Assembly (NCBI GenBank): GCA_904063045.1
Contig: CAJFCJ010000019.1
Span: 1,168,570 to 1,232,569, forward strand
Reading direction: 5' to 3'
DNA length: 64,000 nucleotides
Origin: Dimorphilus gyrociliatus
Lineage: Eukaryota > Animalia > Annelida
Below are positions 1 through 32,020 of this stretch, piece by piece. Below the pieces are notes generated by a model. The model made no database searches and was not told the origin of the DNA. It worked only from the letters and a program-made list of their open reading frames with translations. Numbering within the stretch: position 1 is the stretch's first letter; every line of letters begins with the position of its first letter. The translations under genes were made by a program, and so were the position numbers.

Positions 1-22
1 AGAGAGAGAGAGAGAGAGAGAG
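1..22. repeat. (AG)n microsatellite at the window edge
   Basis: Perfect AG dinucleotide run read directly. Confidence 0.95.
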
Positions 23-18885: not shown

Positions 18886-21800
18886 CTATGTTTCAGAAGG
18901 AAGAAGAATCCTTGAGGCGATATCCGAACGGCACAATGGACAAAGTATTAACGGCTTAGAACAAGCCTGACAGCAGCACACATGTCCACAGTTTAAGAAT
19001 ATAATTTGGGCCTAATTGAATAGAGAAAGAAGTAGAATGATGATAATAAAAAAAAAATTATTTCATTAAGACAGATGAAATCTTACCCGAGAATCCAGAC
19101 AAATAGCACATTGTGCCGTCATTCTCGTAACTATTTCTTCTGGTTGTGATGGTAGTGGATCGCTAGAAACTACTTGGTTTAATCGAGGAGCGCTAGGAAG
19201 GGCAGGAATCGTCGAGATAGACGTTGTTTTTTCGCTAGCCTTCTCTTTTACTTTTGATTGATATTGGCGGGAAAATTTAAGAATTGTTCTTCTGACTTCT
19301 TCCGATTCTATACCGATCTGTTTTGTAAAAGGAGAAAGGGAATTTTTTCAAGCAGCAATAACAATTATTTGCTCCATATTTACCCCTCTCAAGTCAGCAT
19401 CACCCATACCAAGTAGGTTGTTGAAATTTCTAACATTGTTCTGTGCTAATAGAGGCACGTATTCGCTTGCTCCACATTCCAATAGGAAATCCATAAGTTG
19501 AGGATCCATTTCTAGTTCTTTATTCAATATTATTTCCGGTTTCCTTTGTAACAATCTGCGAAGTGGTCACAAAGTGATATAGCAGCTCAGCTTTTAGCAT
19601 TTTTAAGTCTACCTTTGATATTGTACAAGCCAATAATTCACTTGATTGTCTTCCTTACTTTCTTCCATTTCGATCAGGCGTTGTCCGAGTTCGTTTTTGC
19701 GCTTATCCCTCTCGGTGATTAGCGACTGAAGGAGGTCTATCATATTCTTGCGTTTCAACTCCAAAGTGTTCTTTTACAAAAGACAAATTAATGCAAAAGC
19801 AGTTAATAATCGAAGTAACCTTAGTAACGTATTATATATGCTTATTCTAATAATATGATTAAAACTTTATAAGAGGAAAATATCTTACTATTATATTATC
19901 CGTTCTCATTTCCTTTTGCTTCATTTCTAACCAGGATAATTCGGAAAGTTCCTTTTCAATGGTTTCAATTTGTTGTGATATACGGTTATATCTCGTATCA
20001 TTTTGCAGTTGTAAAACCCCAAAAAGTCTCTTTTGTACACTTTCCTCCTCTAACAACCCACGAATGAATTTATCTTGATCGTTATCTTTCTCCTCGTAGA
20101 ATCTTTTGAGTTGATTATCAAAGTTTGAAGAACTATACGTGTTAAAAAAAAAAGGGAAATAAGAGTAACTTTCATAAGCATTTCTTTTGTTAAGGGGACA
20201 ATTATAAGAAATTGTATTACTCCTGTAAGTATTCATTGACGGTTGCACTTCTATGCGATACGTTGCTGTCTAATATACTTTTCAATAATGCGTTTTCTCT
20301 AACCATATCAGTCATAGAGTTTAATATTTCATGTCTTCTTATTTTGTCAGATTCCTCATTTTGAACGAGAAACAAACTTTCTTTCTCTATTCTGTGAAAA
20401 GATTAATTAACGTCCTTAGAAAAAATAAAGAGACTAGGATTAAAGATAAGGTCATCACCTATCTTTTTCTAATTCTTCCAGAAGACTTTCTTTTCTTCTA
20501 GACTTCTCTCCCATTTCCATTAGTTGGTTTAAAACGTCATCCGAATGCTTTTCAACTATTTAATTAAAAGTTGTCAACGAATTAATCGTTGTCATGTTTT
20601 TATTTTATAGAATTACCTTCGCCCAAAATTTTGTGCCAATCGGTTCTCTCTTTATCTTTCGTTTCGTGCAACATATTTAGTTTTTCTTCTATTTGATTAT
20701 TTTCCTAATAGTATAAATCTATTTATTATGGAAATGAGTAGAATATTAAAGAGAAAAAAACCTGCAAAACACTACTAAGTAAGTGTCGTCTCTCTGAAGC
20801 AGAACTGGTAAATCGAGAAACATGCAATTCTTGTTCTTCCTTAATTTGTCTTTCCAATTCAATTCTTTGTCGCCTTTTCTCGTCGGCGTCATTGTATTTG
20901 GCTCTAATAATTTGGTCTACCTTGGTTAAGCCATCATTCATAACGTTACTACTCGATTCGCCAACGTGACTATTTTTCAAAATAGGTAATAAAACTGTCG
21001 TAGGTTGTACATATTCTATTGAGCATTCGGCGCATAAAAATTTCATAATAGGTTCAGTTCCACTGGCGCAGATTTCAGGGGGAGGATAGACAAACTTGTC
21101 GGCATTTAACAATAAACTCTCAAGAGTCTTTATATAAGCAACAATCTTAGGTAAACGAGCAATAGACTCATTTTCCCGAATATCCATTAGCCTTAGACTC
21201 ACCAATCCGTCGAGCGAGTCCGGTAACTGCTTTAGTTTGTTTGCTGGAAAGGTTTTATGTGACGATTTAATAAATGCGTGACTGAATTGGAGAATGCTTA
21301 CATTTTAAATTTAGAGTTTGCAGAGAACATAGTTTTCCTATCGATGGTGGTAATTCAATTAGTTGATTATTCTCTAAGTTAAGTATTTGTAGTGAGGTTA
21401 GATAAGATATTTCGTTTGGTAACTTAACCAGCCGATTTTGATGCAAGTCCAAAATCTGTGGAAACAAAATGGGACAAAATGAATCATTGAGAAAATTAAT
21501 AATACAATAGTGGACTTTTATACAATAAGCAATAAAGAATTGGTACAATCCAGATCTAACAAAAGATTGGGATTAATTATTTTTTCACCCACCCTAAGTC
21601 TTTGTAAATCTTTCAATGAACCTCCTCCGTCTAAAGACTTGATAAAATTCGAATGAGCCAGAAGCACCTGAGACGTAATTAGAAGTGATTTTAATTAATT
21701 TATCAGATTATTTCCTTATGCTCAACTTACCTCTTTCTGCAAAACTTTACATAAAGGGTACACCCCGGATGGAACCTGCGGACGTTTTTATGATTATTTC

Positions 21801-22062
21801 ATATAAAAATGTTGAATAAAAAACAAGCATATAAAAACGCAAACATGGTTGATTTCGCAATCGGATATGTCGTAGTTTCCATCGGGATTTTCTCGTGCCT
21901 GATGTAAATAAAATTTGCAATTTAATATAGTTTCAGTCAAAATAATCTTTAATTTATATATAAAAAAGAGTGATTTATATATACATAAACACTTACTAAA
22001 AATAACTTATGTTCTAATTTTCTATTTGATTTTTCATGTTTCTTTTTACCAAACAGCGGCAT
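18886..22062 (-). CDS. LRSAM1: E3 ubiquitin ligase LRSAM1 (LRR, coiled coil, SAM, RING)
   Basis: Start MPLFGKKK...RKLEHKLFL; CKVLQKE; LRRs; [20 protein letters not shown]; SAM-like exon; last exon [31 protein letters not shown]. Confidence 0.92.
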
Positions 22063-22369: not shown

Positions 22370-24160
22370 ATGCCCTGTATTAGGAAGCGATTCATTGCCC
22401 GATTAAGGAAATACTTTATTTGGATTGCGGCAGCAATTTATATATCAATTCTTCTCTTTATATATCTCACGACAGCGCAGAATGACCAAAGAACGATTCG
22501 TGACACCCAAGAGATTGAGGCTGGAATTAAGAGGCTCAGAAAATTGCAAAGAACTATGTTCATTAACCCAAAAAGACCGGACGACTCTGTCTATAATATA
22601 AACATAACACTAAGCGAACAAATAGCCTTGGATAGGGAAATTCCGGATGTTAGACCGGAAGGATGTTCGTCTATGCGTTACGACATTAGTAAAATGCCGA
22701 AAACAAGCGTCGTTATAATATTTTATAACGAAGCGCTTTCCATGATATTGCGAACGGTTCATTCTGTACTAAACCGAAGTCATAAATCGCTTTTAGAGGA
22801 AGTAATTTTGGTTGATGATGCTAGTACCAATGAAGACTTGAGAACCTATTTACGGCCTTATATAAGCAATTTACCTAAAGTGAAATTATTAACGAACAAA
22901 AAACGATTGGGATTGATTAAAGCAAGATTATTGGGCTTTCATAATGCAGTAGGGGAATTTGTATTTTTTCAAGATGCCCACACAGAAGCTAATGTCCAAT
23001 GGTTAGAGCCTCTCTTGAACGAAATATTAAAAAATCCACGAACCGTTATTCAACCTTACGTCGACGAAATCGATACAAAAACATTAGAGTACAGAGGAAG
23101 CACTGGCAGAGTATCAAGAGGAGGATTCAGCTGGGATCTTCGATATACTTGGACTGATATACCCGATCATGAATGGAACCGCGTCACTAGATTGGCAAAC
23201 GAGGAAAATATTCCTCCTATTTCCTATCCTTTTCGTAGCGCTACTTTAGTTGGCTGCGCTTTTGGTGTTTTAAAGAAATATTTCATTCATCTTGGTACTT
23301 TTGATGAGGATTTTAAGATTTGGGGTGGTGAAAACATCGAATTAGCGTGGAGAACATGGCAATGCCATGGTCAAGTTTTAACTCATCCCTGCTCTAGAGT
23401 AGCTCATACATTTAAACCATTCGCCTATAAATTCGACGGTGACAGAGAAAAAATTGTTCAGAAAAATCTCATTAGAACGGCTGCAACATGGATGGATGAT
23501 TACGCCAAATACTTCTATGCCATCACTTACGCATGGGTTTCAAAGAGAACCTATCTTACAGACGATGAGAAAAAAACTCTACAAAAAAGGAAAGATTTAA
23601 GAAAGAGATTACAATGTAAATCTTTCGAATGGTATTTGGTAAACATTGCTCCCGAAGTAAATATTCCTCCCGCAGACGCAATACATGGTGGAGAGATATT
23701 TAATACTAAAACTGAATCTTGTTGGCATGTTAGGTCCTCTGGATATATCGGAATAACCACTGAATGCTTTTTTCACAGAACTGTACCGGAGAACGAATTT
23801 TTTATGAAACCTTCCAGACACGTATATATTGGTGACAAAGTGCTAAGAGTAGACAAAGGCTCTTGGTTATTATATATTAGCGACAAAGAGCCAAGCAGTG
23901 ATAATGATGAAATATGGTCAATGGAGCACGATGGCTACTATACTGGTAAAATAGTAGTAAATTATAGCCATTTGGGAAAGGCTAGAAAAGCTTGCGCCAC
24001 TCAAGTCACGAATGTACACAAAATACACCAGATGGAACAAATGGTCCAAATGACAGACTGCAGCGACACAGACAGATTTCAAAACTGGCGTTGGACATAT
24101 AAATTCAATTGGAATTATAAATTTGACAAAGATCATGCTCAGCCAGAAAGAGATGAATAA
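22370..24160 (+). CDS. GALNT: Polypeptide N-acetylgalactosaminyltransferase, intronless CDS
   Basis: Type II TM anchor; TSVVIIFYNEALSMILRTVHSV, EVILVDDAS, DAH metal motif, WGGENIEL, PCSRVAH; Cys-containing ricin-like C-terminus. Exact paralog not assigned. Confidence 0.93.
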   Translation: MPCIRKRFIARLRKYFIWIAAAIYISILLFIYLTTAQNDQRTIRDTQEIEAGIKRLRKLQRTMFINPKRPDDSVYNINITLSEQIALDREIPDVRPEGCSSMRYDISKMPKTSVVIIFYNEALSMILRTVHSVLNRSHKSLLEEVILVDDASTNEDLRTYLRPYISNLPKVKLLTNKKRLGLIKARLLGFHNAVGEFVFFQDAHTEANVQWLEPLLNEILKNPRTVIQPYVDEIDTKTLEYRGSTGRVSRGGFSWDLRYTWTDIPDHEWNRVTRLANEENIPPISYPFRSATLVGCAFGVLKKYFIHLGTFDEDFKIWGGENIELAWRTWQCHGQVLTHPCSRVAHTFKPFAYKFDGDREKIVQKNLIRTAATWMDDYAKYFYAITYAWVSKRTYLTDDEKKTLQKRKDLRKRLQCKSFEWYLVNIAPEVNIPPADAIHGGEIFNTKTESCWHVRSSGYIGITTECFFHRTVPENEFFMKPSRHVYIGDKVLRVDKGSWLLYISDKEPSSDNDEIWSMEHDGYYTGKIVVNYSHLGKARKACATQVTNVHKIHQMEQMVQMTDCSDTDRFQNWRWTYKFNWNYKFDKDHAQPERDE

Positions 24161-24542: not shown

Positions 24543-25202
24543 TTAATCAGTCTCTTTTTTAGCAACTACTTCCGAGTCCTGCAAGTCGTTGTTCTTTTGA
24601 TTTTCTTCAACGACAGTCTCACTTGCAGCTGGACCGTTTGATCCATAAGTCTGTTGGATATACTCGGCATAATCGGCATTCTGATTTAGGGAAGTTTGCA
24701 AAGGCAAATCTAGAGGAATTCCTTGCAGCATTCTCAAATATCTAACTTCCTCTTGTAACTGCTCAATAAGATGCCCTTGCTCGTGCTGTCTCGTTTCTAA
24801 ACGTCGAATATATTCTTTTCTCCTCATCCTACTCTGAATAGCTGCAATTCGATTTCTTTGTCGTCTTTGCTCAATTTTGTCACCTACGGTTGGGACGGGT
24901 TTACCATTTTCATCGACTATAGTCGAAGATCCCCTGGGTCTCCCCCTTCGCGATGGAGGAGCTATAGGTTCAATCGACGTTATGGGCGTCGGTTGACAAC
25001 CATAACTGGTTATGGCATGTATAGGCTCAGTGGTGTACTGTTGATGGGGCCATTCCACCCAATTTGAATAACCGGGCTGTTCATAGGTGGTCGGGTAGAT
25101 GTAAGGCCCTTTATCCCCATTTGATATATCGGAAAGTACACCTTCTTGAATGTAAACGGCCGCGTCATTTCGATCAGCCGTCTCTGCCACCGATTGTTCC
25201 AT
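24543..25202 (-). CDS. bZIP transcription factor with an upstream AT-hook
   Basis: RRQRNRIAAIQSRMRRKEYIRRLE basic region (N-x7-R); zipper heptad positions L-Q-L-L; RRGRPRG AT-hook about 20 aa upstream. Confidence 0.8.
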   Translation of the reverse strand: MEQSVAETADRNDAAVYIQEGVLSDISNGDKGPYIYPTTYEQPGYSNWVEWPHQQYTTEPIHAITSYGCQPTPITSIEPIAPPSRRGRPRGSSTIVDENGKPVPTVGDKIEQRRQRNRIAAIQSRMRRKEYIRRLETRQHEQGHLIEQLQEEVRYLRMLQGIPLDLPLQTSLNQNADYAEYIQQTYGSNGPAASETVVEENQKNNDLQDSEVVAKKETD

Positions 25203-26827: not shown

Positions 26828-27553
26828 TTGTATCTAAAAGATATAAAGAGAAGTATTACCAATGCAATATTATTAAATCATATATATATATATTTTCATA
26901 TTTGAATTCAATAAATAGTTCTCCAGAATACAAAAAATAGCAAATTTTTTTCATTCTATTACAATTTAAATATATTTAAATATTCATGTTTTCCTACTTT
27001 ATCGCAAAAATGGAATTCGACGTTAAGAATCTTCTTGGGAAGAATTAGGAGTGGGTGGGAAGAAGCGAAAGGAGAAGGACTTTAGAGGCTTGTAATCCGA
27101 TTATATATTTGAAGTATTCACTCTAAAATCATTCTTTATGTATATACAGAATTTATATATATATCTGAATTACGTATTTGGCTTTATCTCACTCCTTATT
27201 AGAAAGAAACAAGGAGAGAAAGCGTGGGATGCCAATTATGGACTGAAAAAAAATACATATAAAGTGTTGAACTATGACTCTAATTAACATTACATAATTA
27301 AATTTCCCTTAATTTCTAATTTACTCATTTATTTAAGTAATATCAATTATAAGGTTAATAGAATAACAGTTTCTCCTCCGTTTTAATATTACGCTATCAG
27401 TATCTGATATCCTGCAACTAAAAGCTTAGAAAATTTAACCAGTCTAGAGACCAGACTAATAATTGATAAATCGAATAACAAATTTCCTACAACAGTTGTA
27501 TTTCACCAGAATACCAACCTTACCAAACAAATCGCTTTATAAACTTTTATAAA

Positions 27554-29932
27554 ATGGCGACCTCGTGTGAAACAAATACATTGTCATGTTCTGACAATAC
27601 TCAAGGAACAGAAGCAAGTTTAAATCATAATTTTAAGACTGTTATATCGAAAATGATGATGGATTCGATAGAGGTTGAAGCTAAAACAAGAAAAATATCT
27701 TACATTAACCATCTAAAATTTAACCCATATCGAAACAGAAAATAGACAAAAAAGTGAAAGATGATACATTAGAAAAGAGTCTTATCAGCATAGAAAACTT
27801 AGTTCCTAGTGAAATTGATGGTAAAATTAAATTGATAATTTAAAATCAAGATTATAGATAAATCGTTTAAATTTAAAAGGTGAAAATTCTCAAGAAAAGA
27901 AAGATTTGAAGCTAACGGAAGATTTTGCTATATATTTAAAGGTATTTAATAAACACTCCAAAGTACGCTATTTCATAGGAATATCTTTTGAATTTAGGAT
28001 TATCAAAATGATTTTTCTGATAATGCATGGGAAGTTAACAATGCAACTGATTTTGTATTTAAAAGTTTAAGGAGGGTTAGAGAGACACAACATTTCAAAA
28101 ATATGAATTTTAAACATTATATAGCTGATTTGGATGAAGGGTCAATATCTTCTTTAAAATATTAATTTTACTATTTCCACAACATGTTGTTTTTTCCAGA
28201 ATTTTCATGTTTATGACATTATTTAGAATTGTAATTTCAATGCATGAAAAATTTTTGAAAACGATTTCTGACTTGAAGGCGAGGCGTTGGAGATCAGATA
28301 TGTATTCTCACAAATTAAATCAACTGTATGAAGAAATTAAAAGGAACAGAGATAATATGCAAGCAAAACTTAAACCTCTAATTGGAGATTTATTATTTAT
28401 TGTGCAATTTCCGAAACCGTTTCTTAAGGGACAATGTAACGACATAGTACTCAGAATATTAGGAGGCAAAAAAGCAAAAACGCAATTCAAAGTGAAAGAA
28501 TTAGATTGTAAATTAATATTTTTCGGTAACAGCTGGAAAACTGAATGTAGCAGTTCAATGCAACTAAAATATTACATTCTAAATTCATCGACACAAATAA
28601 CAAATCTTTTAGATTCATTAATTGTAGATGACAAATGTATCAAAAGCCAGTTTTCAGTAGAGGTAAAGCATTCTCTATTTAACTCTTTTAACTTAGGAAC
28701 TTTTCTAAAAGTCATATATATCTAAATAGCCTTATGAAGAAGAAATTGGAAACTTTCAATTGGATAAATCATGGTTTCGCTATCATTTAAAGTTTACCGC
28801 AAAGATAAATATATTTGACGAAGATTACGTTATAGAAACCTTCTCTCCAATGACAAACTTTGAAGAGGAAACCTCCGACAGTTTAGGAGCTTTATTTTGG
28901 TATGAAAACTTTTCTCTGGTAAGAATTTTATGATTTAATATTATTTTTCTTTAGTGAAAATTCTATTACTTTTACAGAAAGATTCTTTCAACGGATTATA
29001 CGATGTAAAAGAAACAGTTAAGGAGGATCTATTCTTAGAATGTTTGGCGAAATATTTCTCTGACAGAACTCAGTTAAACTTATTGGAAGATCATTTGCAA
29101 TATCTTAAGTGTCAATTTAATGTGGTAAACCAAAAGATTGATCAAAGGCAATTTTCAAATGTTAGTTCTCTATTCCCATGTCTTTTTCTATAAGAGGTTT
29201 AAATAACTAGGTATGCATACGTCAAAAATTTAAGGTCTGGTACTGGTTTTTGTCTTGTATAAATACAATACAACATCCACAAGTCAAATACTGTTGGGAG
29301 CGGAAGTAGGAAAATATACTATTTCTTTAAAAATTTAATAAATACTTAATTTTTTCAGGTTAATTTACGGATTTATATCAAAGGCGAAGGTTGAAAACTT
29401 ATTGAGATTGAAGAAAGCTTGCAGATCAGCTATTATACGATTTTCTGAGACGTCAATCACAGAGAATCATGCATCAGAATCAGAGTGTGGAAATGCATCT
29501 AATCATCCATGTTGTAATTTAGCACTGGCAGTAGCTTACAAACAGGCTAATAATGGTATTATTTAGCAAATACAATTAAATAAAATATTTAATGTAATTC
29601 ATTTTCAACAGAAGTGAAAATTGAGCACTGTACTGGCCCAGATATTTCATATTTGACAAACACGCCTTTACTCAAATTTGTAGAACTCCTTTTTAAAGAG
29701 AGGAAAGGTGTTGACGATTCAGTACCCTTACTTGTCCCCTTTCCCGATCATCAGCATTTCGATACAGGAGTTGATATAGGAGCGTATGACTCGGACAATG
29801 GTTATTTTATTTTGTCATATCACATATTACATAACTATTAAATTATAGAATTGCTCTTTTATTTATTTAGAGTATGACGATAATCCAAGTGACAGAGGCC
29901 TCAGAAATTTTAAACTTATAGAGCTGTTTTAA
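27554..29932 (+). CDS. STAT: Highly divergent STAT-family protein, 11 exons, about 585 aa (degenerate N-domain, short coiled coil, DBD, linker, SH2)
   Basis: Exons 27554-27673, 27739-27820, 27880-27941, 27998-28140, 28227-28662, 28730-28918, 28978-29160, 29211-29305, 29359-29555, 29612-29800, 29871-29932 join in phase. LFIVQFPKPFLKG...VLRILGGK ~ STAT FIIEKQPPQVLKT...VRLLVGGK; GALFWYENFS ~ ATVLWDNAFA; VWYWF...CWER ~ FWQWF...HWND; IYGFISK...IIRFSET ~ SH2 LGFVNK...LLRFSDS. The 3' end may be alternative. Confidence 0.8.
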
Positions 29933-30490
29933 GACATTTAAGCTGTTCTCTAACCTTTAACAACCAAATAAACAATATTTATGTATTAAAACGACTTTTT
30001 TTCCTTTACTTGGCAGGATTAGGAATAAGACTAGCCTGCAAGTAAATCGACAATCTATTCAATTAATTTTATAATTAATTTTTAATGACGAACGCTAATT
30101 TGATTTACTTTTAGGCCAGAAAGAGATTTATCAACGGAATCCTGAAATGGGTAAAATATAAAATTCTCAAGTCCCAAGACGATTAACAATTTTCGATTTG
30201 AACAAAAAATGTGATGTAATAGAAATAGTATTGAGTGTCGTAAATGCAGTTAAATACTATATAATATAATACTCTTGGCACATCTACAAAAAAATAACAA
30301 TGAGAATGATCGTTTATGAATAAATATAACGTCCTTTAAGCATGTCTTGAGTGTCTGGTCGTGTATTTAGACAACAGGTGGCAGATTTAGTGAAAAATGA
30401 ATAGCCTTTTTTGGGTTGCAATCAGAATTATCGTTTACGAAACTATCCTTGATTATTAAAAGCAGACATATTGAACCTTACTTTTCCTCC

Positions 30491-30771: not shown

Positions 30772-32020
30772 ATGAGTCGCGGGAATATTCGAGACGCACC
30801 CCTCGATTGCAAGGTATATGTAGGAGATTTGCCGAAGGACGCGACAGAAAGAGAATTAGAAGAAGCCTTCTCCTATTATGGAAAATTACGTAATGTATGG
30901 GTAGCAAGGAATCCGCCAGGTTTTGCCTTCGTCGAATTTGAAGATGCGCGAGACGCTGAGGATGCTGTTCGAGAGCTGGACGGATCGTAAGTAGACAAGT
31001 ATTGAGAAGAAGTTAATTAATCAACTTGACATTTATTTGTTTCTTTAGGAGAATATGCGGGGTAAGAGCAAGGGTAGAACACTCTAATGGTAAAATTAGG
31101 CCAAAACCTTGGCTTAGGGATGGGAGAGGACCTCCTAGAAGAAGATATGATCCTTATTATGACAGAAGAGAATCAAGAAGAAATGATAGGCGGTTAGTAC
31201 GATACTTTTTGATCGATAGGGAAAAAATTTTACACTTATCGTTAAAAGCAAAATTACTTTTAAAACTGTCATTAAAAAAATCGTTAAGAATTAAAAACAA
31301 ATAAACACTGCTATGAATGGCAGAATACTGCAACATCTTCATCCGCCAACTACTTCGTCTGTCCTACACATCTGTGCATAAATTGATTAATCCTACACAT
31401 GTAAATTCTACCCAAAAAGCAGCTTCGCAACCCCTTTCGTACACATTTCGTATACTTACTGTGGTACGTAAGTTTTTTAGATGCCACGTGTTTTTGTCAT
31501 ATATTTTATACTGTGTATTTGTGATTCTAAAAGGAGCTAACTAAAAGCACAGATGTTCTTAGATACTTCGTCATCTACTATTTCTAATGACGAAAACAAT
31601 GGTCTGGTACAACTGGTAGACGGCATAAGCTATATTTGTGACGTTCGACTAGTCCTATAACCTTACAGCGCCGTTCACCTTTAAATTTGTTTGTTAAAGT
31701 CACTTTTAATCACAGTAGATCGCGGTCGTATGAAAGAAGAAGAAGCTATTCGAGGAGCAGAAGTCGTTCCCGTGGTAGAAAAGAAAGGTATTAATCATAT
31801 AAATGATAAATACAGTTTTAGAACTTAATCCATTAAAAGCAGATCAAGATCCGGCTCAAGAAGACGATCATACAGCCGATCTCACTCCCGTGAACGCACC
31901 CGAAGCCCAGAAAGAAGGGAACTTAGACGTAGCCGCTCTCCTAATTATGAAAGAAGTAGATCTCGCTCTCCCGGAGCAGATTATGTTAGGGAGGGGTCTG
32001 AACATAGTGACCAACATTGA
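30772..32020 (+). CDS. SRSF3: SR splicing factor SRSF3/RBP1-like (single RRM plus RS domain, no zinc knuckle)
   Basis: CKVYVGDL...[35 protein letters not shown]; RS exons from 31716; stop at 32018-32020. Confidence 0.88.
31324..31467 (+). other. Candidate poison cassette exon (premature stop) in SRSF3 intron 2
   Basis: CAG acceptor at 31323, GTAAGT donor at 31468, in-frame TAA at 31379-31381; many (A/T)C(A/T)(A/T)C motifs. Confidence 0.55.

Follow-up and report, generated by a model that had tools for sequence, protein, structure and literature searches.

The window analysed here, a stretch of 64,000 nucleotides from the annelid Dimorphilus gyrociliatus (NCBI GenBank assembly GCA_904063045.1, contig CAJFCJ010000019.1, positions 1,168,570 to 1,232,569 of the forward strand), contains a stand-alone, expressed gene of 11 exons, whose product is probably a fast-evolving, very divergent member of the STAT family of the short type that lacks both the N-terminal domain (N-domain) and the transactivation tail. 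In a model built from the three forward frames between window positions 27400 and 30100, the 11 exons joined in phase from an ATG at 27554 to a TAA ending at 29932 on the forward strand, giving a coding sequence of 1785 nucleotides (nt) and a protein of 594 residues (Table 1); a preliminary description of this DNA had recognized the same 11 in-phase exons and had put the length at about 585 residues, which falls short of the counted value. The ten introns measure 50-70 nt each and all have GT..AG borders. Only one public run (X1) contains this stretch; it is kept as contigs, the kind of which is not on record, and a single contig of 1949 nt, which behaves as a transcript, matched positions 27508-30042 with 0 mismatches while exactly the ten modelled introns were absent from it. 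Since this contig represents data that were independent of the preliminary description and skips the ten introns exactly, the exon structure is confirmed and the gene is expressed, and all ten joints, for which the preliminary description had sought support from RNA, were found in one contig. No extra internal exon occurs in the contig, which leaves no internal exons able to restore a missing domain, including the exons restoring a coiled coil that had been considered earlier. Coding exons further upstream were ruled out, as the contig opens with adaptor letters that are followed directly by position 27508, and the sequence immediately before this position contains an in-frame stop; a pseudogene was likewise ruled out by the intact frame over 11 exons together with the high depth of the transcript contig.

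The relationship to STATs was assessed by comparison with human STAT3, for which the sequence of PDB entry 6NJS as printed in bioRxiv 10.64898/2026.10.24.761574 served as reference. A 68-residue stretch of STAT3, comprising the end of the linker domain and the first half of the SH2 domain, found its best local alignment in the spliced model at residues 421-478 (score 70, 18 of 58 columns identical). Shuffling the STAT3 stretch 5000 times and the model 2000 times never produced a score this high, which corresponds to an extrapolated Gumbel P of about 4-6e-6. The collinear resemblance to STAT3 from the linker end into the start of the SH2 domain is directly established, and the alignment brings together all elements of a STAT-type linker-SH2 junction, namely a W-x-W and a further W motif, GF(I/V)SK with the pocket lysine, and RFS(E/D)(S/T) with the phosphotyrosine-binding arginine. 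Outside of residues 421-478 three further motif pairs, matched by eye, have counterparts at matching distances when counted by hand: FIVQFPKP here and FVVERQPC in STAT3 at the start of the DNA-binding domain (DBD), LFWYEN and ILWYN at its end, and PLLVPFPD and PLVYLYPD at the end of the SH2 domain. From the DBD start to WY(E)N there are 145 residues here and 158 in STAT3, which has about 7 residues more in the loop separating FVVERQP from the LVIK strand; from WY(E)N to GFISK there are 103 and 108 residues, and from the pocket lysine to the arginine 19 and 18, respectively. In contrast, the part preceding the DBD comprises 201 residues here as opposed to 320 in STAT3, a difference of 119 residues that is about the size of the N-domain.

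Profile and language-model searches pointed in the same direction. All Pfam scans were run on exon pieces (all larger exons and sub-pieces of them) with matches considered up to E 10. Exon 7 matched the Pfam family STAT_linker (PF21354) with E-values of 0.024 and 0.033 (15.5 bits, cut-off 27; profile positions 8-57 of 78), and the location of this match is exactly between the beta-type region and the SH2 domain, although the E-value has to be somewhat discounted because the helical composition of exon 7 may flatter it. For the start of exon 9 (its first 32-37 residues, without the insertion that follows) Pfam SH2 (PF00017) was the sole match, with E-values of 0.083-0.11 and an alignment that covers profile positions 2-32 of 77 in register; the best score, obtained with the first 37 residues, was 13.4 bits and thus below the gathering cut-off of 21, and exon 9 as a whole gave no match. 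In a protein-language-model search the ten best named clusters for exon 9 were all SH2 domains (10 of 10, top score 0.81), while exon 7 found EF-hand families as best matches (top score 0.91), both results ranking as leads by the standards of that tool. The STAT linker domain contains an EF-hand motif (PMC4206453), and the EF-hand matches of exon 7 therefore fit a STAT linker. In summary several weak, concordant signals fall at the predicted places, and for this reason a STAT ancestry of the gene is considered likely, firmly supported for the linker and SH2 domains and circumstantial for the DNA-binding and coiled-coil parts. The STAT identity proposed in the preliminary description is hence sustained remotely, by tests that agree with one another and in which no Pfam threshold was reached.

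Table 1. Gene model and protein features of the STAT-like gene (positions in the window).
Feature	Residues	Positions	Strand	Basis or remark
Transcribed unit		27508-30042	+	one transcript contig; 5' untranslated region 46 nt, 3' untranslated region about 110 nt
Coding exons 1-6		27554-27673, 27739-27820, 27880-27941, 27998-28140, 28200-28662, 28730-28918	+	GT..AG sites, phases
Coding exons 7-11		28978-29160, 29211-29305, 29359-29555, 29612-29800, 29871-29932	+	GT..AG sites, phases
Amphipathic alpha-helical region, about 175 residues	22-194	27617-28374	+	regarded as equivalent to the STAT coiled-coil domain
Beta-type region where a STAT would have its DBD	200-353	28390-28918	+	periodicity, by-eye end motifs
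Acidic loop (SPMTNFEEETSDS)	329-341	28844-28882	+	by-eye alignment anchored on WY(E)N
Linker domain, helical, EF-hand-like, ending in W-x-W and W motifs	354-445	28978-29303	+	weak Pfam STAT_linker match, language model
STAT-type SH2 domain	446-557	29304-29748	+	weak Pfam SH2 match, language model, STAT3 alignment
Phosphotyrosine-pocket residues	K454, R473, S475, E476, S478	29381-29455	+	STAT3 alignment (Lys of GFISK; R, S, E and last S of RFSESS)
GFISK motif	450-454	29369-29383	+
RFSETS motif	473-478	29438-29455	+
Cys/His-rich segment (ITENHASESECGNASNHPCC), 20 residues directly after the phosphate-binding residues	479-498	29456-29515	+	within exon 9 of the transcript
Tail tyrosines in GAYDSDNEYDD	Y570, Y576	29785-29875 (Y570, 29785-29787; Y576, 29873-29875)	+	span crosses intron 10

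By hand count on the 6NJS numbering the five residues of the phosphotyrosine pocket correspond to K591, R609, S611, E612 and S614 of STAT3; the phosphate-binding residues of GFISK and RFSET, which had been pointed out before, are present and align with the STAT3 pocket. Between R473 and P556, on the other hand, the protein has 83 residues where STAT3 has 66, and these 17 extra residues of the SH2 domain lie after the phosphate-binding residues. The Cys/His-rich segment found at this place, with cysteines at 489, 497 and 498 and histidines at 483 and 495, and the 17-residue excess relative to STAT3 had both been overlooked in the preliminary description. The segment adjoins the phosphate-binding loop and could gate or reshape the pocket, and a metal site or a redox switch within it is conceivable. 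The two tail tyrosines in the acidic GAYDSDNEYDD context, likewise noticed before, are Y570 and Y576; they are placed 13 and 19 residues beyond PLLVPFPD, as compared to 29 residues past the P-D motif in STAT3, and their contexts (Y-D-S-D and Y-D-D-N) differ from that of the canonical STAT tyrosine, which is of the Y-(I/L/V)-K type. The protein ends 18 residues after Y576 and 37 residues after the SH2 domain, and a transactivation segment as found at the C-terminus of STAT3 is absent, in agreement with the earlier description.

In the N-terminal half the hydrophobic moment of residues 22-194 peaks at 102 degrees over one single block (P 0.0015 versus shuffles), with proline and glycine at positions 63, 68, 136, 195 and 198 only, a spacing compatible with four helices. 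Residues 200-290 and 291-353 each show a periodicity peak at 166 degrees, which is of the strand type, and in a low-confidence AlphaFold2 (AF2) model exon 5 folds into one helix, at residues 138-192, and then six strands. The order alpha, beta, alpha ahead of the SH2 domain is directly established. On the exon pieces no Pfam signal was obtained, including exons 1 and 4, for the N-terminal interaction domain (PF02865), which characterizes canonical metazoan STATs though not every STAT, nor a match for the four-helix coiled-coil domain (PF01017), and none for the STAT DBD (PF02864, an immunoglobulin-like beta barrel) on the pieces of exons 5 and 6. The length preceding the DBD is too short to leave room for an N-domain beside a coiled coil, and since the shortfall of 119 residues equals an N-domain, the coiled coil need not have collapsed. 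The protein therefore probably lacks the N-domain and retains a helical domain of near-normal size, which is the simpler parse of its sequence.

Within the beta-type region two positions bear on DNA binding. The VVVISNICQ segment of STAT3, which we take to carry DNA-contact residues, corresponds by eye to ETFSPMTNFEEETSDS with its three consecutive glutamates, in an alignment that is inferred rather than statistical, and an acidic loop would accordingly replace the SNICQ segment. The preliminary description had placed PMTNFEEET here; it is indeed present, within residues 330-338, and its interpretation as a replacement of the DNA-contact segment depends on this by-eye alignment. Also by eye, K212 was aligned with K340 of STAT3, presumably a DNA-contact lysine.

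Taken in order, the protein would thus consist of about 175 residues of amphipathic helices as counterpart of the coiled coil, about 150 residues of beta structure where the DBD is expected, a linker resembling an EF-hand, an SH2 domain of the STAT type with a conserved pocket, and a short acidic tail that contains two tyrosines but lacks a transactivation domain. We suggest that the SH2 domain may dock on phosphotyrosine sites, that a tyrosine kinase may phosphorylate Y570 or Y576, and that the phosphorylated protein would then pair by contacts between SH2 domain and phosphotyrosine with itself or with another STAT. Because the acidic loop at the SNxxQ place and the segment beside the phosphate pocket suggest an altered or weakened recognition of DNA and phosphotyrosine, the protein might act as a modulator rather than as a classical activator binding gamma-activated sites (GAS). 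On the basis of these sequence features it is plausible that the protein depends on phosphotyrosine and makes altered or weak contacts with DNA, and it could serve in activation, in repression or in mere sequestration.

The preliminary description had combined these features in a different way, with a degenerate N-domain, a collapsed coiled coil leaving only about 40 residues between this N-domain and the DBD, and a loss of DNA binding, and had proposed a phosphotyrosine-reading decoy, adaptor or dominant-negative STAT. This proposal is consistent with the conserved pocket residues, with the acidic loop SPMTNFEEETSDS found by eye at the place of STAT3 SNICQ, and with the absent transactivation tail. 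In addition, shortened STAT isoforms lacking N- or C-terminal regulatory parts, such as Drosophila deltaN-STAT92E and mammalian STAT beta, can modulate full-length STATs and act as dominant negatives, which also speaks for a decoy. Such isoforms derive from canonical genes and their cores are near-identical; the D. gyrociliatus gene is separate and highly diverged. Against the proposal, a signal of an N-domain was seen on no exon piece, residues 22-194 are one helical region of about the size of a full coiled-coil domain, and the residues missing before the DBD amount to an N-domain, so that neither the 40-residue interval nor the collapsed coiled coil could be upheld. The loss of DNA binding was deduced from a single loop aligned by eye, while the match of K212 to K340, presumably a DNA-contact lysine, argues in the opposite direction. 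A remodelled decoy of this kind is therefore regarded as unlikely. The gene could also be a member of a cryptic, rapidly evolving family of STAT-derived proteins in D. gyrociliatus that lost canonical DNA binding and serve as phosphotyrosine readers tuning or intercepting signalling, perhaps in innate immunity, with the Cys/His segment as a new mode of gating; we regard this as a rather improbable extension of the data. A tblastn search with the model detected no paralogue in the 64-kb window.

Several results weigh against the interpretation as a divergent short STAT. No family reached its Pfam gathering score on any exon piece, and STAT_bind, STAT_alpha and STAT_int gave zero matches; the test proposed in the preliminary description itself, a match to a STAT_bind or SH2 profile, thus yielded nothing at Pfam thresholds, neither on the exon pieces nor on the annotated product into which the gene has been fused, for which RRM_1 and DUF4487 are the only Pfam families on record and SH2 is not among them. 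Exon 7 scored with two unrelated helical families, Lig_C and PROCN, much as it did with STAT_linker. When the two halves of the STAT3 alignment were considered alone, the linker end had a P of 0.14, still at the expected place, and the SH2 part one of about 1e-3, so that the alignment is significant only as a whole and its strength lies in the collinearity. No STAT was retrieved from the full set of PDB sequences when exons 5, 7 and 9 served as phmmer queries. Exon 5, the longest with 154 residues, had no real relative and no self match in a full HMMER search against 1.84 billion representative proteins, and AF2 models computed without an alignment were uninformative for exon 5 alone (predicted local distance difference test, pLDDT, 51) and for exon 9 alone (pLDDT 52), the latter being all-helical and not credible. 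Finally, the assignments of the coiled coil and the DBD, being based on position, periodicity and by-eye motifs, are circumstantial. Likewise, Foldseek of the exon-5 model against PDB returned nothing below E 0.6, the language-model search with exon 5 nothing usable, two metagenome scans, one using exon 5 and the other exon 9, came back empty, and a word search with exon 9 produced no candidate sharing three words in the allowed length range.

A database protein of 647 residues (P0001) that had been the single match to exon 5 in the full HMMER search was rejected as a tandem-repeat artefact, as twelve weak repeated matches had been summed to an E-value of 5e-11 and its Pfam result was noise. 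With its twelve copies of a 53-residue unit, this protein is an example of repeats inflating whole-sequence E-values.

These observations leave some room for a protein that is not a STAT at all, such as a lineage-specific SH2 adaptor with an EF-hand and SH2 module of the kind found in the tyrosine-kinase-binding (TKB) domain of Cbl, in which the STAT-like motifs would have arisen by chance or convergence. The combination of EF-hand and SH2 domain does occur in Cbl, the SH2 domain is the only part of the protein backed by more than one method, the three STAT families named above are without Pfam match, and exon 5 is an orphan. Against this, Cbl_N, Cbl_N2 and Cbl_N3 had no match on any exon piece at E-values up to 10 whereas STAT_linker had one, and the STAT3 alignment, with a P of about 5e-6, runs across the linker-SH2 junction including GFISK and RFSE(S/T)S. 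Furthermore, the order of alpha, beta, alpha and SH2 parts is that of a STAT with distances between motifs within 5-13 residues of those in STAT3, and there is neither a RING domain nor any other part of Cbl in a protein that stops so soon after its SH2 domain. We therefore consider an adaptor of this kind highly improbable and a divergent short-type STAT the better description of the gene.

The public annotation of GCA_904063045.1, an assembly that a genome paper assigns to D. gyrociliatus (PMC10212961), contains a gene that begins exactly at window position 27554, extends beyond 34160 and has a product of 1403 residues; here the STAT-like gene and two genes downstream of it have apparently been joined into a chimera. 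As a consequence of this fusion the STAT-like gene cannot be found by name or by domain. That the annotation is correct, and that the exons described here encode the N-terminal part of a 1403-residue fusion protein continuing into RRM and DUF4487 domains, is suggested by the coinciding gene start and yet extremely unlikely, given that the transcript contig contains the in-frame stop at 29930-29932, continues into a 3' untranslated region with three poly(A)-type signals (AATAAA at 29967, ATTAAA at 29985 and AATAAG at 30024) and ends at 30042, and that the downstream open reading frame (ORF) at 31026-31304 resembles a portion of an RRM gene of the ordinary SR type. The contig data would be compatible with a rare isoform that reads through into the downstream genes.

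Slime moulds, C. elegans and Nematostella are already known to have STATs without N-domain and transactivation domain (PMC3670263), and the suggestion of a possibly undescribed branch of JAK/STAT signalling, made in the preliminary description, is overstated in view of these precedents. The known short STATs, comprising Dd-STATa-d of Dictyostelium, those of Acanthamoeba, STA-1/2 of C. elegans and one STAT of Nematostella, have the same order of coiled coil, DBD, EF-hand-type linker, SH2 domain and C-terminal tyrosine without an N-domain, and some of them likewise lack the transactivation domain (PMC3670263; PMC4206453). In contrast to them, the gene described here comes from a bilaterian annelid, is too divergent for the Pfam thresholds, carries about 17 extra residues beside the phosphate pocket and has tail tyrosines that are followed by acidic residues. 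It may descend from an ancestral short STAT or, alternatively, from a duplicate that was shortened. No literature on divergent STATs in annelids was found, and STAT is mentioned neither in the genome paper of D. gyrociliatus nor in those of its supplements that were available.

If the gene is indeed a short-type STAT, the compact genome of this annelid expresses a relative of STATs so diverged that it was missed by domain libraries as well as by the public annotation, and in which the phosphotyrosine pocket was kept while the DNA-contact loop, the phosphate loop and the tail motif changed. This bears on the diversification of STATs outside vertebrates and insects and warns, in practical terms, that the number of STATs in spiralian genomes is being underestimated. 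This is a modest claim, since short STATs are already known: the gene would be an odd new member of a known family rather than a new pathway, and the data show no new signalling principle.

The genes surrounding the STAT-like gene are ordinary (a leucine-rich repeat/RING protein, a glycosyltransferase, a small bZIP protein and what seems to be an SR-type RRM protein), and the locus lies outside any immune cluster. Downstream, the ORF at 31026-31304 on the forward strand is rich in Arg, Ser and Asp and resembles the tail region of a splicing factor of the SR type; it probably belongs to the RRM_1 gene fused to the STAT-like gene in the annotation. On the opposite strand to the STAT-like gene and 2.3 kb upstream of it, positions 24546-25202 encode a single-exon bZIP protein of 219 residues (bZIP_2, E 4e-6), and further upstream, at about 18886-22062 on the reverse strand, an annotated protein of 720 residues has leucine-rich repeats, a faint SAM match and a C-terminal RING domain (zf-C3HC4_3). 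Between these two, 3.4 kb upstream of the STAT-like gene, the forward strand at 22370-24160 encodes a GT2-type glycosyltransferase of 596 residues (Glycos_transf_2 and Glyco_transf_7C) that is identical to the annotated product and intronless, in a genome where most genes carry many short introns.

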